This document shows positions 22,694 through 48,877 of a stretch of DNA of 64,000 bases, piece by piece (the stretch's first letter is position 1; each line of letters opens with the position of its first letter). The position numbers and the translations under genes were made by a program. The stretch covers positions 1-64,000 of the IMG/VR virus record IMGVR_UViG_3300049855_000348; one strand, written 5' to 3'. The notes below the pieces were generated by a model. The model saw only the letters and a list, made by a program, of their open reading frames with translations, ran no database searches and had not been told where the DNA came from.

Positions 22694-22707
22694 TCATTAC
22701 ATAAGTC

Positions 22708-22941
22708 ATGCCAGCATGGAAATGGATGATCCTGAAGTTCTGTACCAGAGCGCATTTCATGCGGCTCATAGCAACCTTGATCATCCTCATCGCAGGCTTT
22801 CAATCTCTCTACTACCAGAAGATTGAAGACACGTGGTTGATCCTGGTTGGTGCAGTGATGAACCACTACTTCAACCACAAAGAAGCTGCGAACGTCACGG
22901 AAGAAGACAAGAATCCGGACGACGAATGCAAGGTCGGTTAG
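22708..22941 (+). CDS. Small two-TM membrane protein embedded in the tRNA array
   Basis: Two hydrophobic segments and an acidic tail; the stop codon lies inside tRNA-Val. Confidence 0.55.
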   Translation: MPAWKWMILKFCTRAHFMRLIATLIILIAGFQSLYYQKIEDTWLILVGAVMNHYFNHKEAANVTEEDKNPDDECKVG

Positions 22942-23006
22942 TTCAGCGGTAGAACGCTTCTCTTACACGGAAGATGTCGGGGGTTCGATCCCCTCACCGA
23001 CTACCA
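22932..23006 (+). tRNA. tRNA-Val(TAC)
   Basis: Cloverleaf. Confidence 0.93.
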
Positions 23007-29753: not shown

Positions 29754-30350
29754 ATGCGCTTCTTCCTCCTGCTCCTCCTGTCCTTCTCCACTCTGTTCGC
29801 CGGTGATCCTCCGGCTGCCGAGGCCAAGCTGCCTGCCGATGTGCAGAAGGTAGTCGATGAACGTGATGCTGCGGTGGCCAAGGCCAAGGCGGTCTTCGAT
29901 GCGGCTCAGGCCAAGGCGACGACCGAGGCTATCGCCAAGCTGGAGAAGGTGGTTGTCGCCATCACAAAAAAGGGCGATCTCGCCAACGCTACGGCTATCC
30001 AGAAGTTGGTCGACGAGTACAAGGCCGGGCTTCCGGATCTATTGGGTAAGAAACCAGAAACAAAAATCGATCTTGAGGAGGCGATTGTTGGTGTGAAGTG
30101 GAAATTTTACTGGCAAGGTCTTGGTGGTGAAAACAAGATCATGAGATTTGCCCGTAAGGGTGTCATTAGTGAAGGGTCCAACTTCGGTGAAAACAGTTAT
30201 CGCATCAAGGACGGTGTTCTACAACTTCTCAATCAGAATGGTGGAATACACAGCACTCTCACTCTGAGGGCTGATGGGAATCTTGAAAGTGGAGACACTT
30301 CTGAATCAACCTGGAAGGGGAAGTGCTTCTTGATCAAGGCCGAGAAATAA
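29754..30350 (+). CDS. Secreted or periplasmic protein with a signal peptide
   Basis: MRFFLLLLLSFSTLFA signal, Ala/Lys-rich helices, SD AAGGA. Confidence 0.7.
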   Translation: MRFFLLLLLSFSTLFAGDPPAAEAKLPADVQKVVDERDAAVAKAKAVFDAAQAKATTEAIAKLEKVVVAITKKGDLANATAIQKLVDEYKAGLPDLLGKKPETKIDLEEAIVGVKWKFYWQGLGGENKIMRFARKGVISEGSNFGENSYRIKDGVLQLLNQNGGIHSTLTLRADGNLESGDTSESTWKGKCFLIKAEK

Positions 30351-31146
30351 TCCTGATCAGTTCGTTGTTTTTCACGTCCTGACAGAATGATGGGCGATCA
30401 ATAAGAAGGCTGTCGTTTTCAAATACGTCGATCGACAGCCTTTCAACTTCTGCCCATCTATAGAGAAAATGAAAGTGGTAGGAGTAGATCTCGAAGTCTG
30501 ACTCAACCTGAAGAAGTCGACCATCGATGTAGCGAACGGCTGGATGAATGCCTTTGTGATTCTGAAGAGAGTCGCGGCCAACGTGCTTGGCTCCAACTCG
30601 CTTCATCGCTATGGAAAACCACCGCTCATCAAGACAATGATGTTTTTCAGTATCGCAGATCTTTTGCCGAAAGTCCAGATCTTCTGAAAATTCTTTGAAC
30701 CACTTTTCTTGAGTAGAAGAAAAGTAGTCATTTTTGAACCATGTCCAATATCCTCCGATGCGATCATAATGACTGATTATTTCAACATCGTCAGAGATCA
30801 GATTTTTTACTAGATCGTAGTTTCCGTACATGGCATCCATGTCGGTCCACATAAAACAATCGTAATCTTTGATGATGTCGTTGAAGATCCAATAGAAGAG
30901 CGGTCGAAGATCACAAATTTTATAGGCATGCGGAAGACCCTTGAACTCTGGAATTATCTTTCTTACACGCTCGTTGATGTCCTCCATCGACATCTTTACG
31001 AATTCCATGTTAGGATACATCTTGGGAGGAGGTGTATCAGCAATAACGATGTACTTGTCGATTCCCTGCTTCGCACCTGAACGTCCAGTCAGGTGCCAGA
31101 TCTTAGGGTAAGGTCCCTGCCAAACGTTGAGCATGCAAGAACGCAT
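30334..31146 (-). CDS. Glycosyltransferase-like protein (GT-A, DUF6625-like)
   Basis: YKICDLRP...I...YDCFMWTDMDAMYGN, DE..F motif. Confidence 0.75.
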   Translation of the reverse strand: MRSCMLNVWQGPYPKIWHLTGRSGAKQGIDKYIVIADTPPPKMYPNMEFVKMSMEDINERVRKIIPEFKGLPHAYKICDLRPLFYWIFNDIIKDYDCFMWTDMDAMYGNYDLVKNLISDDVEIISHYDRIGGYWTWFKNDYFSSTQEKWFKEFSEDLDFRQKICDTEKHHCLDERWFSIAMKRVGAKHVGRDSLQNHKGIHPAVRYIDGRLLQVESDFEIYSYHFHFLYRWAEVERLSIDVFENDSLLIDRPSFCQDVKNNELIRIISRP

Positions 31147-31147
31147 C

Positions 31148-34009
31148 TTACCACCATGCCTTGAAGAAGCCGATACCGTCGGCGAAATATCTGAATGTAA
31201 CTGACATACCTTTTTTACGCAGGTAGGTAGAAAGACCTTCTATGGTATAATCAGAGATTGAATGACCACTCATCATACTTGCTGAGTATCGATTGTCTCC
31301 TTCCCTGAAGTTATGAAACTCACCGACAATCTTTTTTATTTTAGAAAGTTTTTTGGTGGTGTAGAGGATAGGGAACTCAGATCCTTCACAGTCAATCTTC
31401 AAAAGATCAACTTCATCTAAGATATCGTCTAGACCAATTACAGGGACACTTATTGTTCCACGCTCATAAATCACGTGTGCTCCTCCAAAGTTGTTTCCAA
31501 CGTTGGTGAGACTTGCTATTGATTTACGATATTCGTCTGATCTTCCTATAGCGGCTGTGATGACTTTGATAGATGGATATTTTTTTACATTTTGTGCAAG
31601 TATGAGGAGGTTGTCTAACATCGGCTCACAACATATCACTTCTTTTGCACCAAGTGAGGCGCACATGGCTGAGAATGCACCAATGTTGCCGCCGATGTCC
31701 AACACTGTTTTTCCGCTCACGTCAGATGGTTGTATCTCATACTCGTTTTCAATGACAACAGAGTGAATGACGCCCTGGTCAGTTGTATTTTCACGATAAA
31801 CGAGTTCGTTGGCGATGTTTTTTGCTTTGGCTTTACTGATAGGAAGTTTTGGAATAACTCTTTTGTGTGAATAGTATTCATCAAGCTGTGTTTGAGCAGT
31901 GATAAACTCAACAACATCGCCATGATAAAAACCAAGACCACCACTCTTCTTTATTTTGAAAAGATACAATGGTGTTCCACAACACATAGCCACATGCGCA
32001 ATACCTGAATCAACGGCAAACACAGCACGAGCCGACGAGATTTCGTCAAACAAGGCTTTCATGTCGGTGCCATGGTCTTTGAATGTTGCTAATGGGAAGG
32101 ATGCCTTCATCCATTCATCATGTGGTTGAAGGAAGACTATGTTATAGCCTTGCTCCGTGAATCGAGCGACCAATTGAACGATGTCGTCTTTAGAGATGTC
32201 GTAGTTGTTCGAGTAAGATCCCGACGAATGACCTACAAGGTGAAAAATGACATTGTTCCTTCCGGAATCACCACAAGAATATCCAAGATAGTCATGTGGA
32301 AAATCCAACGCATCAGCCGAACGGTCTTTATTACCGAATTTCATGACCTTGATGAAATTTGAAATAAAGTTAGAGCACTCGAAACTACTCCAGTGCTCGT
32401 GAACACAGTTGTCACTAGGAACTGGGATCCACCCTGTGAAATCCTCAGGTCCACCGTCAACTGGTCGAATCTTTGTTACAGGAATCTGCTCGATCCATTG
32501 ATCAATGTCTTGGTGTTCTATCCTGGCGATGTCTACAAACTCTCGCATCTTTTGATCAATGAGTTTGCTGTTACCGTAAAAGTAAAGTTTCTGCTTTGTA
32601 TGTTTAGCATACCAATAATACAAAGAGACATGCAATATAGCATCACCAAGACCTGACTTCCAGTTGATGTAAAGGAAGGGTTTTTCTTTCACCGCATTCT
32701 CCTTCCTATCAAACCACCGCTCAACCTTGTGTTCATCGTAGTTGAGCGTCCAGTCCCAGAAGGCTTCCTTGCTGCGGTAGACCCACATAGGAACACGCCA
32801 CCCTGCCGCGATGAAGCAGGGTCCGCTCTGGGGGGTGATCAACAGATCGAGCTTGCTGACCATGTCGACTATCCAGGAGATGTCGCCGTTGACCTGTCGC
32901 AGGTCTTCAACGCCCTCAGGAACGATTCTGTTGTCTCGGTTGCCTATCAGGAAGATCCGATGCTTTGGATAGCTTTGACGGGCTTCCTTGAGCATCTGGT
33001 CTAGGACTACAGGGTCGATATCTCCCTGGGTGTTGCTGTGGGTGATCAAACCGATGAGTCCGCCGTTTGGCCTTGGCTTTGGTCTGTTGAAGTGGATGTC
33101 AAAAGACTTTCCTGGAGTCATGGTCGGATCCATGAAACGGTAAAATCTCTTCACACCGTTCATCTGAGGCCATTCGTCTAAAGAAGGGTTACCACCGCAA
33201 TCGATCATGTCGGGAGTGCGTTCAGACCAGATCACCCCATCAAAAAACTCACAGGCAGCTTTGCGTTCTGGTTGAAACCAGACCAACACCGAGTGACCGG
33301 TTTTTATATGATAGAGATGAGCGGCAGCACAGAAACCTAACACATCACCGAGCATCTGGTGACCCATCCAGAATGATTTTTCGGCTTTCTTGACGTTGTG
33401 TGAATCGATAAGGAAATCGTCGTAGACGACCTTTTTCTTGAATCGAACGACTACCTTTTTTTCAATATCAGAGAAGTCATCAAGCTGGAAGGCATATCCC
33501 TCTACGGTGATTTTGACATTTAGATTACTTGCACGATAGAGATAATCGACACCTTCCTGCTTCAAAATCTCAACATTATATTTGAGAAAATCATAGGTCT
33601 TTTTTGGATCATTTACGGCATAAAATTGTGTGCCCCATGGAGCACCACTTTTGATGGTGAATAAGCCTTTTGTATCGAGAGGTAGTGTTGTTTCACTGTG
33701 AAAAAACAAAAGGTCGTAATCGTCACCTTCGTTCATGATACCATCAATATCAGACATGAGTCCACGACGAAAGAGAGCATCATCTTCACAGATGAAGATC
33801 TTCTTATGTCCAGCTTTTATCGCCATTTCTAGGACTTTGATATGACCGAGAGTACAAGCCAGTCGACGATTCTCGTTCACGACTCCGTCTACCACAACGT
33901 AGGTCGTGTTCATCTCTTCCATTTGCTTAGCAAAAATGGCACGTCGATCACTACGGCTGGGGAGACTCAGGACGTAGACCTGATCAACGTAATCATTCAA
34001 CGATGTCAT
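31148..34009 (-). CDS. Multidomain enzyme: GT25-like, two GT9-like domains and a FkbM-like methyltransferase
   Basis: YVLSL..RSDRR..CTLGH..I.EDDA; DLLITPQSGPCFIAA; AVFAVDSG.AHVA...GTP; VLDIGGNIG..LKIDCEGSE. Confidence 0.8.
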   Translation of the reverse strand: MTSLNDYVDQVYVLSLPSRSDRRAIFAKQMEEMNTTYVVVDGVVNENRRLACTLGHIKVLEMAIKAGHKKIFICEDDALFRRGLMSDIDGIMNEGDDYDLLFFHSETTLPLDTKGLFTIKSGAPWGTQFYAVNDPKKTYDFLKYNVEILKQEGVDYLYRASNLNVKITVEGYAFQLDDFSDIEKKVVVRFKKKVVYDDFLIDSHNVKKAEKSFWMGHQMLGDVLGFCAAAHLYHIKTGHSVLVWFQPERKAACEFFDGVIWSERTPDMIDCGGNPSLDEWPQMNGVKRFYRFMDPTMTPGKSFDIHFNRPKPRPNGGLIGLITHSNTQGDIDPVVLDQMLKEARQSYPKHRIFLIGNRDNRIVPEGVEDLRQVNGDISWIVDMVSKLDLLITPQSGPCFIAAGWRVPMWVYRSKEAFWDWTLNYDEHKVERWFDRKENAVKEKPFLYINWKSGLGDAILHVSLYYWYAKHTKQKLYFYGNSKLIDQKMREFVDIARIEHQDIDQWIEQIPVTKIRPVDGGPEDFTGWIPVPSDNCVHEHWSSFECSNFISNFIKVMKFGNKDRSADALDFPHDYLGYSCGDSGRNNVIFHLVGHSSGSYSNNYDISKDDIVQLVARFTEQGYNIVFLQPHDEWMKASFPLATFKDHGTDMKALFDEISSARAVFAVDSGIAHVAMCCGTPLYLFKIKKSGGLGFYHGDVVEFITAQTQLDEYYSHKRVIPKLPISKAKAKNIANELVYRENTTDQGVIHSVVIENEYEIQPSDVSGKTVLDIGGNIGAFSAMCASLGAKEVICCEPMLDNLLILAQNVKKYPSIKVITAAIGRSDEYRKSIASLTNVGNNFGGAHVIYERGTISVPVIGLDDILDEVDLLKIDCEGSEFPILYTTKKLSKIKKIVGEFHNFREGDNRYSASMMSGHSISDYTIEGLSTYLRKKGMSVTFRYFADGIGFFKAWW

Positions 34010-34026
34010 GAGATGGACGCCCTGTC

Positions 34027-34215
34027 TTATTGACGTTGCAGATTCAGTATTTCTAGCTCAAGGTCAATAAGCAAACGCGGAACGTCGCCTCCGTTTGGCT
34101 TACCCTCACGCTTCAGACGTTCATTGATCCAAACGTCGAGGTGTTCCTTCGGGGTATGCTTACGAAGGTGATCAACGACTCGTTGCAGTAGATCGATTTC
34201 ACGATTTTTTGACAA
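34027..34215 (-). CDS. Hypothetical protein
   Basis: 62 aa within the operon. Confidence 0.45.
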   Translation of the reverse strand: MSKNREIDLLQRVVDHLRKHTPKEHLDVWINERLKREGKPNGGDVPRLLIDLELEILNLQRQ

Positions 34216-35050
34216 TGTTGAATCCTTTGATCAAGAGTTCTTTGGCACGCATCAAGTGGACAATAGCCGGACTGTTTTTGTTTTTCTCTCCGCTCATGTA
34301 GTCTTCAAATGTCCAAACCTCTCCCATAGGGAGCTTGTTTACATACTGACCAGTCCAATCAGAAGCCCAGTAGTTGTTGGTGTTTTTGTAGACGTTCAAC
34401 TTCCAGTCATTCACGAAATGACCGATATAGGCTAGAGCAACTTCCTCGGTGATATCAAGTAGGTGTAGCTCGTTACGACCAAACTCATAGAACTCAATGG
34501 CTTTATTGTAAAATTCGTCAATCGACTCACGACGCACAATCCAAAAGCCGGCGTTTGTGTTGTAGACAGGTTGGTCTTGAGGAACACCACGATAGTGTAG
34601 AAGAACCTTGTACCATTTTATCGGTACTCCCCACCAGTCATCACGCTTTACGAACTGACCTTCGCACTTGGATTCAAGCTGGACGAACCATTTGTTGTCG
34701 CGCAGTAGTTTGTCGAATGGACGTGGCTTGCGGACGAAGAAATTGTCAGCATCGAGCCAGACAAAGTAGGCGTAGTCGAGCTTGGAGACCTCTTCCTTCA
34801 GGTACTCGAACTTGAACAGGTAGTGATCGTTGCTCAATTCCTCAATATGGTGGAAGAAGACACCTGGATCGCCAAGGGTATCCCATGGCTCATCAGTCCA
34901 CACATGGAAGTCTTCAGTAACACCAACTCGCCGTGCTGAGATAATGCAGGTCCTGAACATTTTAGCGTGGTCACCGGTGGCAACCGACCAGTAACAGAAC
35001 TCACGATTCGTATTCGGTTGTACGTGGATCAATTCATTTACTTTGTTCAC
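34199..35050 (-). CDS. Nucleotide-diphospho-sugar transferase (GT-A)
   Basis: YFVWLDADNFF (DxD), NAGFWIV, EE.AL, IVHL. Confidence 0.78.
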   Translation of the reverse strand: MNKVNELIHVQPNTNREFCYWSVATGDHAKMFRTCIISARRVGVTEDFHVWTDEPWDTLGDPGVFFHHIEELSNDHYLFKFEYLKEEVSKLDYAYFVWLDADNFFVRKPRPFDKLLRDNKWFVQLESKCEGQFVKRDDWWGVPIKWYKVLLHYRGVPQDQPVYNTNAGFWIVRRESIDEFYNKAIEFYEFGRNELHLLDITEEVALAYIGHFVNDWKLNVYKNTNNYWASDWTGQYVNKLPMGEVWTFEDYMSGEKNKNSPAIVHLMRAKELLIKGFNIVKKS

Positions 35051-35238
35051 GGGTTGTCCTTCGAGTAGGCTGCGTCGTCGATGATGCGATGAAGGCGCTT
35101 GACCTCCATCATCAGAATAACGATGTCCCAGTCGCTTGGTACGACCTGAACGATGTGGGGTAGCTCACACATGGTTTTGTGAGCGTGGTCCATGGCCTCT
35201 TTGAGTGTTCGATCTTTGATGGTCGCGTTCTTGGCCAT
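35047..35238 (-). CDS. Hypothetical protein
   Basis: TAGATT variant upstream; overlap coupling. Confidence 0.5.
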   Translation of the reverse strand: MAKNATIKDRTLKEAMDHAHKTMCELPHIVQVVPSDWDIVILMMEVKRLHRIIDDAAYSKDNP

Positions 35239-35265
35239 GACGAATCTACCCAGGGGAAAGGTGAA

Positions 35266-35472
35266 TCAGGACGGGTCAGCCGGTGTGTAGCGGATGACCC
35301 CGCGACCCTTGGCAATCAGGGCAGCACTTTCGGCATCCCAGCCATCGGCGGTGTAGGTCACGAGGTGCTTCTCGTGGGAGTTGAACGCCAGGGACACCCA
35401 GTATTTGCCGGGCTCCTCAGGCTTCTTTCCCTTGATCCAGGGGCAGCGGTAGCCGTTGGGGGTGATGGTCAT
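35266..35472 (-). CDS. Hypothetical protein
   Basis: ATGA overlap chain. Confidence 0.55.
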   Translation of the reverse strand: MTITPNGYRCPWIKGKKPEEPGKYWVSLAFNSHEKHLVTYTADGWDAESAALIAKGRGVIRYTPADPS

Positions 35473-35753
35473 GTTGGCCTCGGTTTGAACTGGCCGATGT
35501 CGTCGGCGAACTTGGCCCAGCGCAGGAGAGCTTTGGTGGCATCCTCCATGTTCCAGATCAGATCTCGGCCATTCTCTTTTCGAGTGGCTTCGCTGATGGC
35601 TGTGTAAAGCGGAAGGTTGCCTCTGATCAGATCCTCAGCGAAGAACTTCCGGCTCTCCTCCTCTTGCGAGTGTTTGCAGATGATCTCGACAGCGTCTGGG
35701 ACATTGTCTGGTGAGTCTGGTGGAGTGAGACCGCTGCCGACCTGGATGCTCAC
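35469..35753 (-). CDS. Hypothetical protein
   Basis: Overlap chain. Confidence 0.55.
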   Translation of the reverse strand: MSIQVGSGLTPPDSPDNVPDAVEIICKHSQEEESRKFFAEDLIRGNLPLYTAISEATRKENGRDLIWNMEDATKALLRWAKFADDIGQFKPRPT

Positions 35754-36337
35754 AGGCGACTCGCTGTGTTCCCGATTTGTTCGAGCTTGTCGAGGCGAGT
35801 ACCGAGTTGATATTTGGCATGCTCGGTGATGAGTTGGCCGAGGATTCTACCCTTCAACTGGTAGTCTGACAGGTTGTAGGCGATGGTGTTGAAATGCTGA
35901 TCTCCGCGCACACTATTGACGATGTCTCGGATGATCTCGCAGATGTTCTTGAGGGCGTTTTTCGCATCGTACTCACCACTGAAACCGGGCAAACTCTGAT
36001 CGTTGTCTTTGAGTAGCTGTTGTTCGATCTCGTTTAGCCTAACACTGAGAGATTCGACGAGCTTGGTAAAGTCGTTTTGATTGACGCTGTGAATAGCATT
36101 CAAAACCTTATTACCCTCATCGATGAGTTTTTTCAGGTCAGCAGCTTTGGCTTCGATATCGACGTAAACCTTCTTCGCCGCGACATCGATGATCGTCTCA
36201 ATCTCTTTCTTTGTGCTCTCTGAGATCTTGAGGCTTACTACCTTGATGGCCTCATCGATCGCACGCTGACGCATCTCTGGCGATGGCCAGAGAAAGGCTT
36301 CGTCCATCTGAACTGGCTCAGGAGCATCAACCATCAC
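35750..36337 (-). CDS. Coiled-coil hypothetical protein
   Basis: Overlap chain. Confidence 0.6.
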   Translation of the reverse strand: MMVDAPEPVQMDEAFLWPSPEMRQRAIDEAIKVVSLKISESTKKEIETIIDVAAKKVYVDIEAKAADLKKLIDEGNKVLNAIHSVNQNDFTKLVESLSVRLNEIEQQLLKDNDQSLPGFSGEYDAKNALKNICEIIRDIVNSVRGDQHFNTIAYNLSDYQLKGRILGQLITEHAKYQLGTRLDKLEQIGNTASRL

Positions 36338-39878: not shown

Positions 39879-39967
39879 TGGCGGAAGTGGCACGAATCGA
39901 ACGTGCAAGACCCGTGAAGGTCTGTTGAGGTTCAAGCTCAGTCCCCTCGCCTATAGGGAGCACTTCC
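39879..39967 (-). tRNA. tRNA-Ser(TGA)
   Basis: Long variable arm, G73, CCA. Confidence 0.9.
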
Positions 39968-39972
39968 ATGAA

Positions 39973-40064
39973 TGGCGGATACGGCAGGATTTGAACCTGC
40001 GGGTGACTTGCGCCACCTCCTAGTTTCGAGCTAGGTGCGATAAGCCGGGCTCTGCCACGTATCC
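39973..40064 (-). tRNA. tRNA-Ser(CGA)
   Basis: Long variable arm, G73. Confidence 0.92.
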
Positions 40065-40069
40065 ATGAA

Positions 40070-40162
40070 TGGCGGATTGCTAGGGAGTCGGACCCTCAAC
40101 GTGTTTCCACGTTTCATCGCTTTCCAGGCGAGTACGGTTAGCCACCACCGTCAACACAATCC
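40070..40162 (-). tRNA. tRNA-Ser(GGA)
   Basis: Long variable arm, G73. Confidence 0.88.
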
Positions 40163-40167
40163 ATGAA

Positions 40168-40259
40168 TGGCGGAACGGGTGAGATTTGAACTCACGGGTG
40201 ACTTTCGCCACCTCTTCCTTAGCAAGGAAGTGCAATAGGCCAGACTCTGCCACCGTTCC
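40168..40259 (-). tRNA. tRNA-Ser(GCT)
   Basis: Long variable arm, G73. Confidence 0.93.
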
Positions 40260-40263
40260 ATGA

Positions 40264-40347
40264 TGGTCTCTGAGGTGGGACTCGAACCCACAAAGCTGCG
40301 ATGTTTAGGACCGCAAGGTGTGCCATTCCCTATGAAGCCACTCAGAG
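40264..40347 (-). tRNA. Atypical tRNA-Leu(TAA)-like
   Basis: GCGGT-CCTAAAC-ATCGC (C33), expanded D region, short variable loop. Confidence 0.65.
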
Positions 40348-40351
40348 AAGT

Positions 40352-40429
40352 TGGTGTCCCATGCAGGAGTCGAACCTGCAAAGATCTGCATTTTGAATGC
40401 AGCGCGTCTGCCAATTGCGCCAATGGGAC
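40352..40429 (-). tRNA. tRNA-Leu(CAA), short variable loop
   Basis: Cloverleaf, A73. Confidence 0.9.
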
Positions 40430-40430
40430 G

Positions 40431-40507
40431 TGGTATCCACGAAGAGATTTGAACTCTTACTGTTCGGTGCCTAAGACCGATGCCTCTGCCGGTTGGGCTA
40501 CGTGGAC
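40431..40507 (-). tRNA. tRNA-Leu(TAG), short variable loop
   Basis: Cloverleaf, A73. Confidence 0.9.
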
Positions 40508-40513
40508 GTGAAA

Positions 40514-40599
40514 TGGTGGGATAGGCTGGAGTCGAACCAACAGTGGCGGTGAAGCGTCACGTTTACAGCGTGGTGAGCCTTCCAATGCTCAACTATCCC
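40514..40599 (-). tRNA. tRNA-Tyr(GTA)
   Basis: Long variable arm, loop CTGTAAA. Confidence 0.9.
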
Positions 40600-40609
40600 A
40601 GATGAAAAA

Positions 40610-40688
40610 TGGTACCCGTGACAGGAGTCGAACCTGCAATTTTACTACCACCTCAAGGTAGCGCGTCTGCCAATTTCGCCACACGGGC
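40610..40688 (-). tRNA. tRNA-Leu(GAG), short variable loop
   Basis: Cloverleaf, A73. Confidence 0.9.
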
Positions 40689-40691
40689 ATG

Positions 40692-40769
40692 TGGTACCGG
40701 GGGCGGGAGTCGAACCCGCAAAGAACATGGACCTGAACCATGCGCGTCTGCCTGTTTCGCCACCCCGGC
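40692..40769 (-). tRNA. tRNA-Leu(CAG), short variable loop
   Basis: Cloverleaf, A73. Confidence 0.9.
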
Positions 40770-40982: not shown

Positions 40983-41564
40983 CTATTTCTTGTGGGTGCC
41001 CTCCACGCCACGAGCGACACGGTCCATGGTGCGCTTGTGCAGCCAGAGGCGAGCAGTGTCGAGATGGTTCAGTGCGACAGCATTGTCACGGCAGGAAAAT
41101 TCTCCCTTCATGAAGCCCTCCAAACGATCGATGAGGATGGCGAGCAGGGCTTCGTGGCTGTTGCCGTTGTAGCCGGCTTCTTTCACTGGGCCGTTCTGGA
41201 AGGTGATGCGCTGGACTTTGAAGGGGGTTTTGACTTTGAACCCAAGGGAACCCATGATTGGGATCTTCGCAAAGTTGAAATCGTCCAGAATAGTGAGGGT
41301 GGTTTCTTCGTTGATGTCGAATTCGGTTCGACTCGGGCCATCCTCTTCGTTGGAATCCAACAGAGCTACAACATCTTCCCATTCTTTGTGTTGTTTCCGA
41401 ATCACCGGATCTTCAGAATCCGGTTCAGGTTCGCCATAGGGGATCAACACGACATAGTCGTGGCAGGCACCACCACTTCCCGGCTTGTCCAACACGAAGA
41501 TGCGCAAAGCCTCGTTGAGGCCGTTGACGCGGTGGGCGGTGAGTTCACGGATATTAGGACGCAT
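40983..41564 (-). CDS. tad1: Tad1-like cyclic-nucleotide sponge (anti-Thoeris) with an acidic insertion
   Basis: GSGGACHDY, ITFQNG, LL.I..DRL..F..G.FS.R.NA.AL.H...A..W...R..DR..R.V.GT match Bacillus phage Tad1 as I recall it. Confidence 0.8.
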   Translation of the reverse strand: MRPNIRELTAHRVNGLNEALRIFVLDKPGSGGACHDYVVLIPYGEPEPDSEDPVIRKQHKEWEDVVALLDSNEEDGPSRTEFDINEETTLTILDDFNFAKIPIMGSLGFKVKTPFKVQRITFQNGPVKEAGYNGNSHEALLAILIDRLEGFMKGEFSCRDNAVALNHLDTARLWLHKRTMDRVARGVEGTHKK

Positions 41565-41755
41565 GGCGTTCTCCAGACACGCCGCAGGCCGGGTGGGAAC
41601 AGAGTGTCCCCGGTGCCGTCGGCCACATATGGGCTTCAGGCGTGATGGATCGACCTGCGATCACTGTCGACCTCTGTCTACCTGCCGGCTAAATACGTCA
41701 AGCCCAGGCTTGACTTGGTCATGATAGCGACTACTATGTCGCCAACGAGGAAACG

Positions 41756-42262
41756 ATGGCCTATCCTAACCGTGAACTCTACCTGCCGATCCTCCTAGAG
41801 GTCGAGGAGGCTGTCACCCGTCGCGGCGAGAACCGTCCACTGATCGTCGAGGCGGCCTACAAGAAGATCATCGCCGAGTGGGGTGCCAACCTCACCGAAG
41901 AGGAGCAGACCTCGCTGGGTGCCTTCCGCCTGATCATGGAGCAGTTCGCCCTGCGGAACCAGATCCAGGCCGAGGCGGCTGCGCAGATCGTCACCAAGTC
42001 GGCGGTACAGCGTTGGGGCGTCGACAACGTCCCGAACTGGGCCAACCTCACTACCATCCAGCAGACCGCTGCCCTCTTCACTCGTCTTAGCTCGAAGGCG
42101 AAAGAGATCGTCTACGAGGACATCATCTCGAAGGACGGCAAGCCACAGCCCGGCAGCACGCTGAAGTGGGATTTCCCCGATGTCGATGAGACACGGGCGA
42201 AGATCGCCAAGGTCTTCCTCGACGACATCATCGCTCAGGGTCAGGGTGCGGAGCAGCAGTGA
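41756..42262 (+). CDS. Hypothetical late protein
   Basis: 168 aa, SD GAGGA. Confidence 0.7.
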   Translation: MAYPNRELYLPILLEVEEAVTRRGENRPLIVEAAYKKIIAEWGANLTEEEQTSLGAFRLIMEQFALRNQIQAEAAAQIVTKSAVQRWGVDNVPNWANLTTIQQTAALFTRLSSKAKEIVYEDIISKDGKPQPGSTLKWDFPDVDETRAKIAKVFLDDIIAQGQGAEQQ

Positions 42263-43059
42263 AGAAGCCGATCAATCAATCCGTTGCCAAGATCATCACT
42301 GAAAACGACTGGGGTTCTTACCTCAAGTTGCCAGTTTCTGAAGATGATCTCCTGAACGAATCGCAGAATGATCGGCTCAAGCGGCTGCAACGCATTCTGA
42401 CCGCACGGCATTTCGGCATCATGAGCCCGCATCGTTCCTTCGCACATCATCAAGACATTCCTCAGAAGGGAATGCGTCCTGAAGGTGATCCTGCGATCTA
42501 TCGTGGTGATCAATCCGCCCTTCGCTTTGTCGGCGCTGACTTTCGTGGCGGCAAACAGGCGATGAAGATGACGCACAACGCCGCTGCATGGAGTCAACTC
42601 CGTCAGACCGTATCGCATCTTGGTTTCAAGCCGCTGCCGGTAACCGGAGCCTTCAAAGAGAAGGGGGGTGAACTGGGGGCGGAGGCTGCGCTGGTGATCC
42701 CAGGGACAGGTCACGGGAAAGTCCAACTTTCTCAAGCCGTCCTGGTCAACCTCGCTCGTCGCTACAACCAGGACAGCTTCATCTACGCCGGTCCCGAAAC
42801 GCAGGGCAAAGTACACCTGTTCGAGGTGTCGGCGCGAGGGAAGAGTGGCCTTCCAACCGCCTATGATCATCACTTCCCAATCGGCTCAGCAGAGACACCA
42901 TCTGATATCCGATCGCTAGTGCAGCGACTCTACAAAGCCGAAGACGATCCTCAGAAGATCCAAGGCTTGGCACAGCCACGTCGTCATGGTGAACAGCCAG
43001 TGAAACGTCCGACGTTTGGCACCCAACTCGGAAAGGGTAAGGGAATAACATTTACATGA
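42259..43059 (+). CDS. Probable internal head protein (DUF3293-like region)
   Basis: FGIMSPHR...G.F.E...E..L.IP...LA.RYNQDS. Confidence 0.6.
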   Translation: MKKPINQSVAKIITENDWGSYLKLPVSEDDLLNESQNDRLKRLQRILTARHFGIMSPHRSFAHHQDIPQKGMRPEGDPAIYRGDQSALRFVGADFRGGKQAMKMTHNAAAWSQLRQTVSHLGFKPLPVTGAFKEKGGELGAEAALVIPGTGHGKVQLSQAVLVNLARRYNQDSFIYAGPETQGKVHLFEVSARGKSGLPTAYDHHFPIGSAETPSDIRSLVQRLYKAEDDPQKIQGLAQPRRHGEQPVKRPTFGTQLGKGKGITFT

Positions 43060-43589
43060 GCGAGATCCAGGTTCTTGACGGCATGCTCGACACCTCCCTG
43101 CACGATGAGCAGGGGAGAAAACATGGTGTTTTCAGACTGGTCGGGGATCCGTATAACTGGAACAAGGGCAACTGGACCTTGTTGGTTGAGTACGTTCGTG
43201 GAGTTCAACAGTTCCCGGTCAAATGGGAGTCTCCATCTGGTCGCATCGAACGCCGATCGAGAAGCTACTGGGTTGATGAGAAGGGTCTCGTTGGTCCTGA
43301 TGGATGGACTCGATACTACAGCACCAATCCAGATGCGATTCTTGAGGAAGGCTTCGCCGGCCCATCAACACCTGCCGAGCACATCTACTACAACAAGGAT
43401 GGCACAGAGGTTCTGTACCATAAGCGTTGGACGGCAAAACAGACACGTAAACGGAAGACCGAACCACCATCGCCGAACAAGTGGCCGAAGGTCTGGCCTG
43501 CCGAGAGTGTCAAGAAGCCCCGTCACCCCCGTTACATCGAGATCTCTGAATCAAACAACGTCACGCCAACCGATGTGATCTATAAGTAA
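43056..43589 (+). CDS. Hypothetical protein
   Basis: ATGA overlap. Confidence 0.6.
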   Translation: MSEIQVLDGMLDTSLHDEQGRKHGVFRLVGDPYNWNKGNWTLLVEYVRGVQQFPVKWESPSGRIERRSRSYWVDEKGLVGPDGWTRYYSTNPDAILEEGFAGPSTPAEHIYYNKDGTEVLYHKRWTAKQTRKRKTEPPSPNKWPKVWPAESVKKPRHPRYIEISESNNVTPTDVIYK

Positions 43590-43592
43590 GTC

Positions 43593-44246
43593 ATGGACTT
43601 CATCGGCTTCGTCAATCGTCTGAACGAAGGTTTCGTCAGCGTCCCCAAGCAGCCATGGAAGACCAAGGAAGAAGCCCTGGCCCTGGCTGAGAAGGCGCTG
43701 CCGGCCTTCCGTCGTATCCTGATGAAGGCTGCGCCGGCTGATTCCGTGGTGAAGTACGCCATCAAGCCATCAGAGTCGATTGATGACAAACTCCAACGCT
43801 GGAAGCCTGCCGGTCGTGGTATCGACACCATGTTCGACATGCTGCGTGGTGCCATCCTGGTCCGTGACGGTGAGGAGATCCAGGACACCATTCATCGCCT
43901 GAGCCGTGGGCCAGTGGTCGCCAAGTTCGAGCACAAGGATGAGCCGAAGGATGCTCTGGGCTACTACGGCAGCTACCACATCGACCTGTACCTGCCTGAG
44001 TTCAAGGTGGTGGCTGAGGTCCAGGTGATGACCAAGAAACTCTGGGCGTACAAGAAAGAGGCGCACCGGATCTACAAGGAGCAGCGCGGTAAACCTCAGA
44101 TCGACCCTGCTGCTGCGAGCAAGTCACGGGAACTCTACCGTGTCGGCAACACGCCGAAGAAACTTACTGCGCAGAAGCCTGAGAAAGCCGATCGCGCAAT
44201 GCTGCAAGCTGCCCGTAGAGGCGAGCACCCGGACCTATCTGATTGA
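43593..44246 (+). CDS. RelA/SpoT-like nucleotidyltransferase (small alarmone synthetase fold)
   Basis: K..ESI.DK..R, D..R..I, GYYGSYH, AEVQVMT. Confidence 0.75.
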   Translation: MDFIGFVNRLNEGFVSVPKQPWKTKEEALALAEKALPAFRRILMKAAPADSVVKYAIKPSESIDDKLQRWKPAGRGIDTMFDMLRGAILVRDGEEIQDTIHRLSRGPVVAKFEHKDEPKDALGYYGSYHIDLYLPEFKVVAEVQVMTKKLWAYKKEAHRIYKEQRGKPQIDPAAASKSRELYRVGNTPKKLTAQKPEKADRAMLQAARRGEHPDLSD

Positions 44247-44757
44247 TGCCAGCCTTGCGGGATGCCAGCAGCAAAGCCTCGGCACCTTGAAGGTAGTTCT
44301 TCACCCATTCTGGCTTCATGGTCTTCGACCCGTCCAGTAGGTTGTCGTAGCGATCGGCGAGCTTGATCAGCACCGCATCCAACGACTTGCCCGAGAAGCC
44401 AGCGATGTAGGCGTTCTTGTCCTTGGTCCCCGGAGGCTTGGTCAGTTCACGCACCAGCTTTTGCACCCGTTCAGGGAACTCGGAGATGTCAGCCTTGGTG
44501 TCTTCGAGCACGTCGTGGAGGTAAGCCGCTGCCAGCACCTCTTTGTCCACCACACCAGCGTTCTGGAGGATCTTCACTACCCGTTCAGGGTGGACGATGT
44601 AGGGGTTCTTCCCATCCTTCCGGATCTGACCTTCGTGGGCGATGGTGGCGAATGAGCGAGCGTGTTCCAGCAGGTCGCGTTGACCATTGCCAGCGATGTG
44701 GTCCATCACATCGTGGTCATCGTTCGAGAGGGCTTCGCAGAGGATCTTCTTTTTCAT
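44164..44757 (-). CDS. Mesh1/SAH-like HD hydrolase
   Basis: AH.GQ.RK.G..PY..HP, AAYLHDVLEDT, V.ELT, IKLADR.DNL. Confidence 0.88.
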   Translation of the reverse strand: MKKKILCEALSNDDHDVMDHIAGNGQRDLLEHARSFATIAHEGQIRKDGKNPYIVHPERVVKILQNAGVVDKEVLAAAYLHDVLEDTKADISEFPERVQKLVRELTKPPGTKDKNAYIAGFSGKSLDAVLIKLADRYDNLLDGSKTMKPEWVKNYLQGAEALLLASRKAGINQIGPGARLYGQLAALRDRLSQASAQ

Positions 44758-44766
44758 GTTGTCCTT

Positions 44767-44794
44767 ATGATAGCGTTAGTTTTGTCTAAGTCAA
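44767..44794 (-). promoter_or_regulatory. Class I promoter
   Basis: TTGACT-N16-TATCAT. Confidence 0.8.
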
Positions 44795-44836
44795 CCTTTT
44801 GATCGACGTTCTTGCGTCTACCAAAATAGCGATAGA

Positions 44837-47800
44837 GTGATCGCCATGCCGACCCTTTCCTTGCATTCCCATACTGTCTACTCCCAACGTGACTCGATCG
44901 TAAAGCCTGATGCAATAGCTACCAAGATCAAAGCCAACGGCGGGACGCACTACGCCGTTACCGACCACGGCACTGCCCAGGGCTGGCTGGCCGTCCGTGA
45001 TGCCTGCAAGAAGGCCAAGTTGATCCCGATCTATGGGGTCGAGCTTTACGTCAACGACTTCATCCTCGTTTTCAAGGAGATCCAACGACTCCGTGATGCC
45101 GCCCCCAAGAAGGAAGCCCCACAGGTCGTATTGCAGGCGATCAGGGACAAGATCCTGCCTCTGATGTCCCCAGCACAGGCCACCTACTTCACGTCGAACC
45201 TGGACGATCCCAAGGACCCTGTCGCAACCGCCAAGCAACTGATGATGCGCCTGGGCTACGGCTACGAGCATCTGGTGGCTGTGGCCGTCACCGCCCAAGG
45301 CCGGGAGAACTTGATCCGCCTACACAACAAGGGGCAGACCGACGGCAACTACTTCAAGCCGCAGGTGACCACCGACCAATGCCTTGCCGCTGCTGAGGGC
45401 ATCATTTGGACGACCGCCTGCATGGGTGGTCCGATCGCCAAACGTTTCCGCTACGACCCGACTGGCCAGGAGGCGCTGAATTACCTCAACCGCTGGCAGG
45501 CACACAAGGCGAACTTCTACCTGGAGGTCCAGCCGCTCGACCTACTCGACCAACGCCGGAACAACAAGCGCCTGATCGCTGTCTCCAAGGTGACCGGCTT
45601 CCCGCTGGTCCTGTCACAGGACAACCACCACCTGAACGAAGAGGACTGGGTTGCTCACCGTGCGCTGATGCTCTCTCAGAACGACCGTACGATCGAACAG
45701 ATCGAAGAGACCTATGCCTACCAGGGGAGCCTTTTCACCTTCACCGAACTGAAGCGCAAGCTCGGCGTCTCCACCACGTGGCAAGCGCAGGAGATCATCG
45801 AGAACGAAAAGATCGAAGTGAGGATCCCGGCTGGTCACCACTACGGGGATGTGAAGCTCCACTGGCGTACCAATGACGATGTCCGCAAACAGTGTGAGAC
45901 CACCAACCCTGAGTTGATGCCGATCATCGACGAATGCTTCGCCACCACCGATCGACTCTGCCAGGAGATCAAAGAGATCCCCTGGTCAACCAAGCATCGC
46001 CTGACGCACTATGACGACGCCAGGGCACAAGCGTTGGCAATCTGCCATCAGCGTCTGAAGGACCTTGGCTTCGATCGTGAGACCGTCAACGATGGTACTG
46101 TGGTTGTCACTGAAGGTGAAAAGCCGTCAGAGATCAAGGCCAAGTATCTCGCTTGGTTGGAGAAGGAAGACAAGGTTATCACCGCCTGTGGATTCTGGGA
46201 TTACATCTGGACGCTCTATCGAGTGACCAAGGCTGTGCAGGACGAAGGTATCCCAGTCGGCTACGCTCGTGGCTCTGGCGGTGGTTGTCTCGTGATGTTC
46301 CTCCTTGGTATCATCCGTGTGAACCCAGTGAAGTATGGTCTGTACTTCGAGCGATTCCTGAACCCGGCTCGTCTCGGTTTGGATCCGAAAACCTTGAAGC
46401 GTGTGAAGGAGATGGCGTCCTGCCCTGACGCTGACCTGGACTTCTCATCGATCAGTCGCAAGCGGGTCATCGAGATCACCGAACAGATGTTCGGCAAGGA
46501 GTTCGTGGTTCCTGTTGGAACCGTCGGCGAAGCGAAACTCAAGACCGCCATGGCCGATCTGTGCCGCGTACTCAAGATCACGCAGGCTACCTACATGCCG
46601 GTCTCGAAGGAACTGCCTGAAGACATCAATGGCGTCATGACCTTCGAGGATGCGATGAAGGTGCCGGCATTCGCCGAGTTCATCGCCAAGCATGAACTCC
46701 TGTCCAAGCTGTTGGCTCCGCTCATCGGTGTGATCCGTTCTACTGGTCAACACGCTGGCGGTGTCTGCATCGCCGACGTTCCGGTTGCCAATGCTGTGCC
46801 GGTGATCCGTGCTGGTGCCAAGGATGGTGGCAACATTGTCACCGGCTTCGGTGAGTCTGGTGCTGAGCGTGCTCTTGAATCCATCGGCTTCGTGAAGTTC
46901 GACTTCTTGGCTACTGATACTGTCGACCATGTCTCTTTGTGTGCCCGTTCGCTCTACGAAGAACATCTGGCCAACGGCGGTCAGCCGTGGGTGAAGCCTG
47001 GGGAAATTCTGCTCTACCCTGAGCAAATCCCACACTTCACCGAGAACGATCCCAACGTGATGAAGGCGATCTTCCATACCGGCAACACCGACGGCATCTT
47101 CCAGATGGAAGAACAGATCGGTAAGCAGATGGTGCAGTTGGTGAAGCCAGACACCGTCGATGAAATCTCCGACATCAGCACCATGATCCGTCCTGGTTGT
47201 TTGCAGGCGCATTGTACGTGGTTCACCAATGCCACCGGTGCGGTTGAGAACAAAGTCGGCAGTGGTCTCCACTTCGCTTACGCTGCTCGTAAGTTCGAGC
47301 GTGAACTCAACCCACCACCAGATCTACCTCAGGAAATCTTGGAGGTCTTGAAGCCAACGCACTACTGCTGCATCTACCAGGAACAGATGATGTTCCTGAT
47401 TGAGATCGTCACTGGTGGCAAGATGTCACTCGGTGAAGGTGACATCTACCGTCGTGCCGTCGAGCACTCGGCGAAGGGTGTTCCGGCAGCAATCGAGACG
47501 CTGGCCAAGATGGAAGGCGAGATGAAGGCTGCCGGTGCCTACTCACCGGACATCGTCGAGACTGTCTGCACGATCATCAAGGGTGGTGCGGCCTACTCAT
47601 TCAATAAAGCACACTCGCTGTCCTACTCGCTCTTCAGCTACGGTCAGGCGTGGTTCAAGCATTACTACCCGCACATCTTCCTGGCCAGTCACGTGAGTCT
47701 GCTCGCAGCGAAGAACAAGCTGGAGAAGGCTCACAAGATCATCAACAACGGTCGCTCGATGGGTATCGAGATCAAAGCACCACACGTCCTCCACTCGAAA

Positions 47801-48601
47801 GAGAAGGCAACGTGGGGCGCAGACAAGAAGACAATCTTCCTTCCGTTCACCACCGTCAAAGGTGTGAAGGATGAAACCGCTCTGGCAATCCCTAGACTCG
47901 CTCAGGGCTGCACCACCGTTCTCGATTTCATGCTCAAGGCTCGGAAGGATCCGGCGATCAAGAAGAATCATCTGATCGACCTCGCTCGCATCGGCGGCTT
48001 CGATGGTATGGACAATGTTCCGCGCCTCAAAACGGTTGCTGCGATCACTTACTGTCTTGCTCGTGTGACGGCTAAACAAAGCGATCAGATCTTCACCGAG
48101 TTCTGGAATCAGGCTCTGGCATTCACGTGCCTTGGCGAGATCACCAACGAACGAAAGTCACAGATCGAAGTGGAGGTGTTCGGTTCGTTCATCAACGAGT
48201 CACCACTCGACCGTATGCTGCCATGGCTCCACGAGAACGGCTGGCAACCCATGTCCCAGATCGTGCCAGAGAAGGATCAGGAATTCCCGGTGTTCTTCCT
48301 CACCACCGGTGTGACGAAGAAGGTCCACAAGACCGGCAACAGCAAGGGTAAGGAATGGCTCAAGCTGACATGCTGGGATGGTGAGGGCGTCTGCGAACTC
48401 AACATCTGGGCTCATGACCTCCAGGGAACTCCCGAGGAGGGCATCGTCGGCTACCACGGAATCATCAAGCCGAACCAAGTCTATTTGGCCATCATCCAAG
48501 CCGACGGGGAGCGCCCGGTCTCCTTGGCTCGACGCAAGGTCTACAACGCACGGGTTCCTGAGATCCGGACGACATTGGCGATCAAAAACCTGGGTAGCTA
48601 G
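44837..48601 (+). CDS. dnaE: DNA polymerase III alpha subunit
   Basis: PHP domain (LHSHT.YS..D, TDHG, GVE), RGSG, FERFLNP.R, PD.D.DF, HAGG, KFDFL, FNKAH. Confidence 0.95.
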   Translation: MIAMPTLSLHSHTVYSQRDSIVKPDAIATKIKANGGTHYAVTDHGTAQGWLAVRDACKKAKLIPIYGVELYVNDFILVFKEIQRLRDAAPKKEAPQVVLQAIRDKILPLMSPAQATYFTSNLDDPKDPVATAKQLMMRLGYGYEHLVAVAVTAQGRENLIRLHNKGQTDGNYFKPQVTTDQCLAAAEGIIWTTACMGGPIAKRFRYDPTGQEALNYLNRWQAHKANFYLEVQPLDLLDQRRNNKRLIAVSKVTGFPLVLSQDNHHLNEEDWVAHRALMLSQNDRTIEQIEETYAYQGSLFTFTELKRKLGVSTTWQAQEIIENEKIEVRIPAGHHYGDVKLHWRTNDDVRKQCETTNPELMPIIDECFATTDRLCQEIKEIPWSTKHRLTHYDDARAQALAICHQRLKDLGFDRETVNDGTVVVTEGEKPSEIKAKYLAWLEKEDKVITACGFWDYIWTLYRVTKAVQDEGIPVGYARGSGGGCLVMFLLGIIRVNPVKYGLYFERFLNPARLGLDPKTLKRVKEMASCPDADLDFSSISRKRVIEITEQMFGKEFVVPVGTVGEAKLKTAMADLCRVLKITQATYMPVSKELPEDINGVMTFEDAMKVPAFAEFIAKHELLSKLLAPLIGVIRSTGQHAGGVCIADVPVANAVPVIRAGAKDGGNIVTGFGESGAERALESIGFVKFDFLATDTVDHVSLCARSLYEEHLANGGQPWVKPGEILLYPEQIPHFTENDPNVMKAIFHTGNTDGIFQMEEQIGKQMVQLVKPDTVDEISDISTMIRPGCLQAHCTWFTNATGAVENKVGSGLHFAYAARKFERELNPPPDLPQEILEVLKPTHYCCIYQEQMMFLIEIVTGGKMSLGEGDIYRRAVEHSAKGVPAAIETLAKMEGEMKAAGAYSPDIVETVCTIIKGGAAYSFNKAHSLSYSLFSYGQAWFKHYYPHIFLASHVSLLAAKNKLEKAHKIINNGRSMGIEIKAPHVLHSKEKATWGADKKTIFLPFTTVKGVKDETALAIPRLAQGCTTVLDFMLKARKDPAIKKNHLIDLARIGGFDGMDNVPRLKTVAAITYCLARVTAKQSDQIFTEFWNQALAFTCLGEITNERKSQIEVEVFGSFINESPLDRMLPWLHENGWQPMSQIVPEKDQEFPVFFLTTGVTKKVHKTGNSKGKEWLKLTCWDGEGVCELNIWAHDLQGTPEEGIVGYHGIIKPNQVYLAIIQADGERPVSLARRKVYNARVPEIRTTLAIKNLGS

Positions 48602-48604
48602 GCC

Positions 48605-48877
48605 ATGGGATTACCAGCCGCTCGCATCGGTGACACCTACGCCATGCACACCGACATGATCCTCACCGGATCACCGAACGTGTTGGTCAACGGCAGGGGT
48701 ATTCACCGGGTGATGGACATCTTCATGTGTCCGATCGTTGGCATCGGCATGACCGTTATGGGTTCGCAGACGGTCAAAGTGAACAACCAGTTTGCCGCCC
48801 GGGTGATGGGGGTCGGTATCTGTGCCGGCCAAAACCTCATTGCTACAGGGAGCCAAGACGTATCAATCGGAGGTTGA
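48605..48877 (+). CDS. PAAR-repeat tail spike tip protein
   Basis: PAARIGD, GSPNV.VNG, AARV, GSQDV.IGG. Confidence 0.85.
   Translation: MGLPAARIGDTYAMHTDMILTGSPNVLVNGRGIHRVMDIFMCPIVGIGMTVMGSQTVKVNNQFAARVMGVGICAGQNLIATGSQDVSIGG

Follow-up and report, generated by a model that had tools for sequence, protein, structure and literature searches.

The first 64 kb of the IMG/VR virus record IMGVR_UViG_3300049855_000348 (64,000 nucleotides (nt); hereafter the window) carry two convergent genes that overlap at their 3' ends, one for a protein with the fold of a small alarmone synthetase (SAS) and one for a small alarmone hydrolase (SAH). The parent record is a 220,489-bp viral sequence with direct terminal repeats, judged complete, from a freshwater sediment sample. 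No tyrosine integrase was detectable in this 220-kb genome, and the carrier of the pair is apparently a large virulent phage. Both open reading frames (ORFs) end at unambiguous stop codons, and the SAH gene is the only leftward gene within a rightward block that extends from 41756 to the end of the window. A megablast search with 42000-46000 against the phage collection returned no match. The pair consists of the following features.

43593..44246, + strand: gene for an SAS-fold 3'-pyrophosphokinase of 217 amino acids (aa), assigned from Pfam, family profiles, an AF2 model, Foldseek and motif conservation
44164..44757, - strand: gene for a Mesh1/SpoT-type small alarmone hydrolase of 197 aa, assigned from Pfam HD_4, PDB matches and an alignment
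44164..44246, no strand: convergent 3' overlap of the two genes, 83 nt, from the ORF coordinates; overlaps are kept in relatives
44767..44794, - strand: promoter-like site of the SAH gene, TTGACTTAGAC-N8-CGCTATCAT, one of 13 copies of a phage promoter motif

With the SAS sequence alone, phmmer against the PDB returned only noise and NCBIfam and PADLOC gave no match, while Pfam RelA_SpoT (PF04607) covered profile positions 3-111 of 113 with 23.2 bits (E 8.6e-5), under its 27-bit gathering score. As Pfam left the assignment under threshold, we ran an exhaustive profile search for the family, which yielded 602 cluster representatives at E<=1e-3 and 231 at E<=1e-10. Pfam RelA_SpoT matches 127 of 148 aligned members (E<=1e-3), several of them over the gathering score. 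A profile of ten close homologues reached RelQ/RelP structures in the PDB at E about 1e-4, and family profiles matched RelP, RelQ, Rel and Tas1 (Tas1 at 4e-6) and no chain named CapRel or FaRel2 at E<=1. The AF2 model, built with 148 relatives in the alignment, has a pLDDT of 92.7, and Foldseek matched it to 5dec, 6ox6, 6fgk, 6ex0 and 7ztb (RelQ, Tas1, RelP, CapRel) at E 1e-6 to 1e-5, with probability 1.00 and TM 0.5-0.6; the CapRel structure 7ztb was matched at E 7.5e-6.

The synthetase motifs of the protein lie at K58..S62..K66 (syn1), D82xxR85G86 (syn2), G123-Y-Y-G-S-Y-H129 (syn3), E142xQ144xM146T (syn4) and H158xxY161K (syn5). Across the 148 relatives K66, D82, G126 and E142 are invariant, and K58, R85, Y124, H129, Q144, M146, H158 and Y161 are conserved to at least 90%, S62 being excepted; the same level is reached by E12 of an RLNE motif at residues 9-12. 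The canonical arginines are not in place: the syn1 Arg (RxK) is replaced by Ala, syn2 reads D-M-L-R-G-A with its Arg moved to D+3, and syn4 reads E-V-Q-V-M-T with Met for Arg. Since these replacements are conserved family-wide, we take the odd motifs as the signature of a distinct subfamily and not as decay; DxxRG is present in 103 of 158 retrieved members and ExQxMT in 115 of 158. (p)ppApp synthetases are marked by RYT (for AVR) in syn2, GxN (for SxH) in syn3 and YH (for IR) in syn4 (PMC12226406). These signatures are not those of the window SAS, whose syn2 R-G-A agrees in the Arg position only, whose syn3 is S-Y-H and whose syn4 V-M fits neither pattern. Judged by its motifs, the family is a hybrid, with an Apk-like syn2 Arg position, a syn3 like that of RelA/SpoT homologues (RSH) and a syn4 resembling neither. 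The conserved core ends near N186 (nt 44151), just 5' of the overlap, and the tail (residues 191-217) differs from relative to relative and is less confidently modelled.

The hydrolase is a single-domain protein of 197 aa that scores 46.4 bits with Pfam HD_4 (PF13328; cut-off 27.2). Its best solved relatives are human MESH1/HDDC3 (3nr1/5vxa) at E 1e-13, followed by SpoT/Rel hydrolase domains and the small alarmone hydrolases 7qoc, 6yvc and 6z3o. In an alignment of 30 relatives H41, R46, H56, H81, D82, E85, D86, K132 and D135 are invariant and N139 is conserved to at least 90%, so that the metal-binding and catalytic residues (H56, H81-D82, E85-D86, D135, N139) are all present. Residues 1-28 form a clade-specific N-terminal extension, and a C-terminal helix, encoded within the overlap, is conserved in relatives down to about 47% identity. 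By these residues SAH is predicted to be an intact Mesh1/SpoT-type 3'-pyrophosphohydrolase, and both proteins, which keep their catalytic residues, are predicted to be catalytically competent. A preliminary description of this DNA had proposed a RelA/SpoT-like synthetase with an RLNE motif and DxxR for DxxGxR, convergent with a Mesh1-like hydrolase over an 83-nt overlap. The ORF coordinates confirm the arrangement, and both fold assignments stand, the one on the Pfam span, AF2/Foldseek and the family profiles, the other on an HD_4 score over cut-off with MESH1 as the best solved relative; the RLNE is there, and the DxxR (D82-M-L-R85-G86) is conserved across the SAS family.

Most of the 602 family representatives come from metagenome contigs of unchecked origin, and the named genomes that carry the SAS are large phages: Variovorax V45v66, Desulfovibrio/Nitratidesulfovibrio 7757, Sinorhizobium phiN3/phiM12/phiM7/phiM19 and Paraglaciecola GD1. 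A further 18 loci are on viral contigs of IMG/VR, often 50-256 kb in length. A narrow-pattern scan of one genome per species across 185,579 prokaryote species gave a single match, on a 6.9-kb scaffold (L035, MUGE01000057.1) of a metagenome-assembled genome (MAG) binned as 'Thermoplasmata archaeon M11B2D'. The SAS protein that it encodes (P0010) recurs on a 90-kb viral contig of IMG/VR (L010/L018), and the scaffold probably represents phage DNA wrongly binned with an archaeal MAG. Outside short metagenome contigs, and with this one narrow-pattern scan of prokaryotes, the subfamily appears to be restricted to phages and viruses. Seven members are fusions of SAS and HD domains, with SAS first in three and HD first in four; HDxxED is kept in all seven, and the SAS motifs are almost all intact. 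Other fusions join the SAS to an N-terminal nucleoside diphosphate kinase (NDK; P0143), to DUF3008 (P0133) or, in four members, to NIF/HAD-type phosphatase domains, which hints at a wider nucleotide-phosphate toolkit around the SAS enzyme.

The convergent overlap itself is kept in relatives whose SAS is 77%, 61% and 55% identical to that of the window and in two more reached via SAH relatives of 52% identity. The overlaps in these five measure 80, 56, 50, 53 and 44 nt, and the cassette is found in six lineages and two contexts, one relative cassette adjoining a Pyr_excise and a clamp-like gene and not DnaE. In an SAS relative of 38% identity the HD gene is divergently adjacent; the pair is tandem in Paraglaciecola GD1 and the viral contig G018, and convergent in G001. 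An HD_4 gene occurs somewhere in the genome of all four SAS-bearing isolate phages tested and in 3 of 6 complete IMG/VR records with an SAS. Altogether, SAS and SAH co-occur in 8 of 11 complete genomes, against a base rate of 300 matches to the window SAH among 50,697 phage records. On the SAS tree, HD adjacency appears in about three places, and the well-supported branches are compatible with a single origin. Prediction of an SAS+SAH complex scored 0.56, against 0.01 for the best control, and was graded as weak support, the mark in use being one that 58 of 80 solved complexes and 2 of 110 mismatched pairs reach; the runs agreed in at least 48% of contacts, with partner pLDDT of at least 83. 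Given adjacency in several layouts, the fusions and the co-occurrence, we regard SAS and SAH as functionally linked.

Not every SAS locus is coupled to an HD gene. The commonest neighbour of the family is a small protein of about 130 aa with a DUF6934 domain, found at 16 of 25 loci (L002 4538-4933; L003 4446-4901; L017 8583-8942, - strand; L019 8516-8902, - strand; L029 8455-8838; and 11 more) and absent from the window genome. Its gene is often convergent with the SAS gene, overlapping it by a few nt. Loci without DUF6934 tend to have an adjacent HD gene, and two loci (L017, L029) have SAS, DUF6934 and HD together. The DUF6934 fold is weakly GNAT-like (Foldseek E 0.015). We rejected the ideas of a hidden HD domain and of a Tis1/IapK-like immunity protein, as hhalign against the SAH and SAS alignments gave a probability of 0.1 and no PDB sequence matched. 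DUF6934 is a candidate alternative neutraliser or partner of SAS, and its alternation with HD echoes the two kinds of neutraliser, binder and hydrolase, of the FaRel and Apk2 systems (PMC7229694, PMC12226406).

In the window, the 83 nt at 44164-44246 that the 3' ends share encode both the conserved SAH C-terminal helix and the poorly conserved SAS tail. Because the helix is conserved and the tail variable, SAH appears to set the constraint, with the SAS tail reading through the overlap. No intrinsic terminator or terminator-like hairpin was found between the convergent genes, and RNA structure in the overlap is moderate (z -2.28 on the + strand, -0.47 on the - strand). Transcripts of the convergent genes would share at least 83 complementary nt, which makes mutual interference plausible. 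A sediment metatranscriptome contained a 185-nt contig (44103-44287) that spans the overlap with 100% identity, as well as a further two contigs from orf266, upstream of the SAS gene; such contigs give neither strand nor level, and DNA carry-over is possible. Natural variants from two freshwater metagenomes comprise 10 synonymous and 2 non-synonymous changes in SAS and 4 and 1 in SAH, the sole non-synonymous SAH variant being ATG>GTG at the start codon. These overwhelmingly synonymous variants speak for purifying selection, strong in SAS.

The promoter-like site of the SAH gene has the form TTGACT-16-TATCAT (44794..44767, - strand) and ends 9 nt before the ATG. It belongs to a 28-bp motif, (aGGTG)TTGACTTAGAC-N6-GTCGCTAtAaT, whose spacer holds a small inverted repeat, GACC...GGTC. 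The window contains 13 copies of the motif where none are expected, and no shuffle of the window reproduces it; the copies lie on the + strand at 7651, 14082, 14135, 24620, 26524, 28862, 29340, 48874, 53555 and 56687, and on the - strand at 39245, 39875 and 44794. At 9 of the 13 copies the -10-like hexamer is 6-7 nt from the start codon behind it (9 nt at SAH), a spacing that suggests that the phage makes many leaderless mRNAs. The SAS gene stands last in a four-gene operon whose promoter-like site is a degenerate copy of the motif, and its upstream neighbours are as follows.

41710..41737, + strand: degenerate sigma-70-like site TTGACT-16-TACTAT of the four-gene SAS operon, followed by an 18-nt leader with a GAGGA Shine-Dalgarno sequence
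41756..42262, + strand: orf168, first gene of the SAS operon, kept in close relatives (ORF and family searches)
42259..43059, + strand: orf266, a weakly supported, probable member of the S-adenosylmethionine (SAM)-lyase family (Pfam 20.9 bits against a 28-bit cut-off; Atlas feature score 0.91, 214 shared features)
43056..43589, + strand: orf177, directly 5' of SAS, its stop codon ending 3 nt before the SAS ATG (weak MORN/YwqK-like matches only)
40983..41564, - strand: Acb2/Tad1-hairpin-like gene, transcribed divergently from the SAS operon (weak Pfam match in the window copy)

Timing cannot be read from these sites. The preliminary description gave SAH an early promoter of its own: a promoter-like site is indeed present, but its class also precedes the helicase block and the PAAR/baseplate block, so that with helicase and baseplate/tail genes behind it the motif is not diagnostic of early expression. 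We accordingly rejected any temporal class drawn from promoters, since the motif precedes mixed gene classes. Nor was the proposal that the SAS gene ends a late-looking operon supported, given the operon's own sigma-70-like site and Shine-Dalgarno sequence and its anti-defence-like neighbours; in its order orf168, orf266 (probable SAM-lyase family), orf177, SAS, it looks like an accessory or anti-defence/takeover cluster and not like a late structural operon.

Among these neighbours, orf177 has no family match, its MORN-repeat and 'YwqK antitoxin'-like structural matches having TM < 0.4; three of its nine natural variants are non-synonymous, and the gene is absent from the relatives of 55% identity. 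In the distant relative L010 a clear SAM-lyase gene lies 2.6 kb from SAS. A kinship of orf266 with the 'methyltransferase' 5' of the phiN3 SAS was rejected, phiN3 gp278 being a Rossmann-type methyltransferase unrelated to orf266. The Acb2/Tad1 hairpin match of the 40983-41564 gene has E 0.03, and homologues in two relatives carry the Pfam hit without the weak mark; its product is a possible sponge for immune signalling nucleotides. To the right of the pair lie a gene for a DnaE-type DNA polymerase III alpha subunit of 1254 aa (44837-48601, + strand; PHP, DNA_pol3_alpha and finger domains in relatives) and, directly after it, one for a small PAAR-motif protein (48605-48877, + strand); other genes follow, among them that for a baseplate wedge subunit (61082-63040), and replication and tail modules are joined here in an unusual way. 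The genome of 220 kb has 33 tRNA genes, every one of them within the window, in two arrays at 18491-23006 (+ strand) and 39879-40769 (- strand) that serve 18 amino acids, with none for Asp or Cys. An island at 30001-36000 has a GC content of 0.43-0.51, against about 0.56-0.59 in the rest, and may be a recent acquisition; it holds a 953-aa gene (31148-34009, - strand) with a C-terminal methyltransferase-like domain.

We give an even chance to the interpretation that SAS and SAH, coupled in function and both catalytically competent, act as a pair on a 3'-pyrophosphorylated purine nucleotide and form a split Rel-like module that the phage uses in infection. With ATP as the donor, SAS would add a beta-gamma pyrophosphate to the 3'-OH of a purine nucleotide and so make an alarmone of the (p)ppGpp or (p)ppApp type, and SAH would act as an Mn2+ hydrolase that removes the 3'-pyrophosphate from this product. 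Together they would correspond to the split catalytic half of a bifunctional Rel/SpoT enzyme, a half that is fused in some relatives. The phage may use SAS to reprogramme or arrest host metabolism, with SAH limiting the amount or timing of the product and, as a by-product, defusing host defences based on alarmones or toxic SASs (toxSASs). Convergent overlapping transcription from separate promoters would allow independent, possibly mutually interfering expression. The analysis shows the folds, the intact active sites, the conservation across the family, the genomic coupling and a distribution so far confined to phage or viral sequences, and from these we infer the substrates on the donor and acceptor side, any toxicity, a part in host takeover and interference by antisense transcription. 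A nucleotide is favoured over tRNA as the substrate because the SAS profile reaches RelP, Rel and Tas1 and not CapRel/FaRel2, because syn3 SxH is kept and because an NDK fusion exists; the SxH element is associated with guanosine recognition (PMC12226406).

Several observations weigh against this interpretation. The RelA_SpoT match of the window SAS is sub-threshold, an HD_4 gene was not detectable in three of the six complete IMG/VR records with an SAS, DUF6934 is the commonest neighbour of the family, and solved Rel HD-SYN structures, remembered by the predictor, may underlie the complex score. SAS is basic, with an isoelectric point (pI) of 9.5 and a family median of 9.26, and tRNA-binding toxSASs are basic proteins. 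RelQ-type enzymes hold the adenine of ATP with a pair of arginines; SAS appears to have lost or displaced both, and its donor/acceptor specificity may differ from that of any studied enzyme. No sequence signature is reported to separate tRNA-targeting from nucleotide-forming toxSASs (bioRxiv 10.1101/2021.04.30.441581).

That SAS is instead a translation-targeting enzyme seems unlikely to us. Besides the basic character of SAS and its family, this alternative can draw on the 33 tRNAs of the phage, all with encoded CCA, on the Foldseek match to CapRel and on two gene neighbourhoods: in phiN3 a CCA-adding enzyme is encoded 3 kb and a peptidyl-tRNA hydrolase (Pth) 1 kb from the homologue, and the GD1 homologue adjoins an RNA ligase/phosphodiesterase gene. 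Mesh1-type SAHs are also reported to strip pyrophosphate from pyrophosphorylated tRNA (bioRxiv 10.1101/2021.04.30.441581). It fits poorly with a family profile that finds RelP, Rel and Tas1 and no CapRel/FaRel2 at E<=1, with the retained SxH of syn3 and with the NDK fusion, which points to nucleotide metabolism; the window genome has no detectable CCA-adding enzyme or Pth, and indiscriminate tRNA inactivation would hurt a phage that depends on translation. In a selective form, which we hold to be quite improbable, SAS would pyrophosphorylate host tRNA CCA ends, and the phage's 33 CCA-encoding tRNAs would escape or be restored by SAH. If this were true, the pair would be a switch handing translation to phage tRNAs, and a chemistry until now known from defence toxins of bacteria alone would serve takeover. 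A classical toxSAS toxin-antitoxin, exclusion or abortive module has a similarly small chance: here SAS would be a toxin silenced by SAH as a type IV antidote and released to exclude competing phages or enforce phage maintenance, like Phrann gp29/gp30 or FaRel-ATfaRel. SAH-neutralised and phage-borne toxSASs both have precedent (PMC7229694), and the three-part SAS, DUF6934 and HD loci (L017/L029) resemble faRel with two antitoxins and apk2-iapK-aph1 (PMC12226406). The window genes, however, are convergent with separate promoter-like sites and not a co-oriented operon; fusions with two active sites, in both orders, would be odd for a toxin and its antidote; the SAS carriers are large phages without a detectable integrase; and, in the one narrow-pattern scan, no cellular or prophage copy turned up save the probably mis-binned MAG scaffold. 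Of the effector and antidote suggested in the preliminary description, the frame of a synthetase with a product-erasing hydrolase is retained, and a strict toxin-antitoxin fits poorly with the active two-domain fusions; a packaged effector is not supported, as the protein has no MuF or other virion-targeting domain and is encoded outside any structural module.

A slender chance attaches to the view that the two genes are independent, SAH being a counter-defence against the host stringent response or toxSASs, SAS having an unrelated role and their adjacency being a chance outcome in a hypervariable accessory region. Phages often carry an SAH that stands alone (300 phage records), and such SAHs are reported to neutralise toxSASs (PMC7229694), the HD gene lies tens of kilobases away in most SAS-bearing genomes, and the neighbourhood contains anti-defence-like genes. 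Against this stand the repeated adjacency in four layouts, the fusions in both orders, the movement of the cassette as a unit between contexts and a co-occurrence far over the base rate. It is hardly credible, finally, that SAS is catalytically dead, a pseudoenzyme or nucleotide-binding regulator, as its Pfam score under cut-off and its lost syn1 Arg, displaced syn2 Arg and syn4 Arg-to-Met change might suggest: the replacements are conserved over hundreds of clusters, the Mg2+ ligands D82 and E142 are invariant, the variants show strong purifying selection, and Apk2-type (p)ppApp synthetases likewise have an Arg at D+3 and no syn4 Arg (PMC12226406).

Among characterised systems, the pair resembles FaRel/ATfaRel/AT2faRel of Cellulomonas marina (type IV/II toxin-antitoxin; PMC7229694) in linking a single-domain SAS to a single-domain HD hydrolase able to erase its product, and the third small partner of some window-SAS relatives gives a three-part layout. 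It differs in that the genes are convergent with a 3' overlap and not in one operon, that the carrier is a large, apparently virulent phage and not a bacterial chromosome, and that the SAS, with its DxxRG and ExQxMT motifs, forms a subfamily apart. With Apk2-IapK-Aph1 of prophage MuF polymorphic toxins and with Tas1/Apk1 (PMC12226406, PDB 6ox6) it shares a phage-borne SAS fold accompanied by a hydrolase immunity gene, as well as the syn2 Arg at D+3 and the absence of the canonical syn4 Arg, and Tas1 is among the best fold and profile matches. Yet the window SAS has no MuF, PAAR or other delivery domain, its syn3 is SxH and not GxN and its syn4 VM and not YH; its hydrolase is Mesh1/SpoT-like, matching Aph1 (PDB 7smg) at E 9.5e-5 against 1e-13 for MESH1. 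The catalytic N-terminal half of long bifunctional RSH enzymes (Rel/SpoT; PDB 1vj7, 5xnx) likewise combines an HD hydrolase and a SYNTH domain on the same 3'-pyrophosphate, a likeness extended by the HD-SAS fusions and the weakly predicted contact; the window genes, in contrast, are separate and on opposite strands, lack TGS/ACT, have relatives in the reverse SAS-HD order and show an identity to Rel of about 18%.

Stand-alone phage SAHs, such as PbcSpo of PVP-SE1 and PaSpo of SSU5 (Salmonella phages; PMC7229694), are also single-domain Mesh1-like HD hydrolases of lytic phages, proposed to counter alarmone or toxSAS defence, whereas the window SAH is linked with a phage SAS as its cognate partner and has the clade-specific N-terminal extension and C-terminal helix. 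The tRNA-pyrophosphorylating toxSASs (CapRel SJ46, FaRel2, PhRel/Phrann gp29, PhRel2) share the SAS fold, a basic protein and phage links; unlike them, the window SAS has no pseudo-zinc-finger or antitoxin domain and no co-oriented type II antitoxin, and those systems serve host or prophage defence, whereas the window pair sits in a large phage without a detectable integrase. Pairs of SAS and SAH and phage SAHs (PMC7229694) are already known, as are phage-borne (p)ppApp synthetases with hydrolase immunity (PMC12226406). A limited literature search found no description of a conserved SAS subfamily with its own motif signature that occurs almost only in phage or viral sequences, of a recurrent coupling or fusion of SAS to a Mesh1-like hydrolase, or of a convergent overlapping SAS/SAH cassette or an alternative DUF6934 partner.

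The conserved remodelling of the donor/acceptor pocket may point to a product other than the known alarmones. Cultivable relatives with an SAS (Sinorhizobium phiM12-like phages, a Variovorax phage, a Desulfovibrio phage and Paraglaciecola GD1) make the question directly testable. Earlier work on alarmone synthetases concerned their roles as stress regulators in bacteria, as toxins and as effectors against phages; phage SAHs were considered a possible counter-measure. The pair described here suggests that the phage side owns both halves, and that large phages write and erase 3'-pyrophosphate marks during infection.

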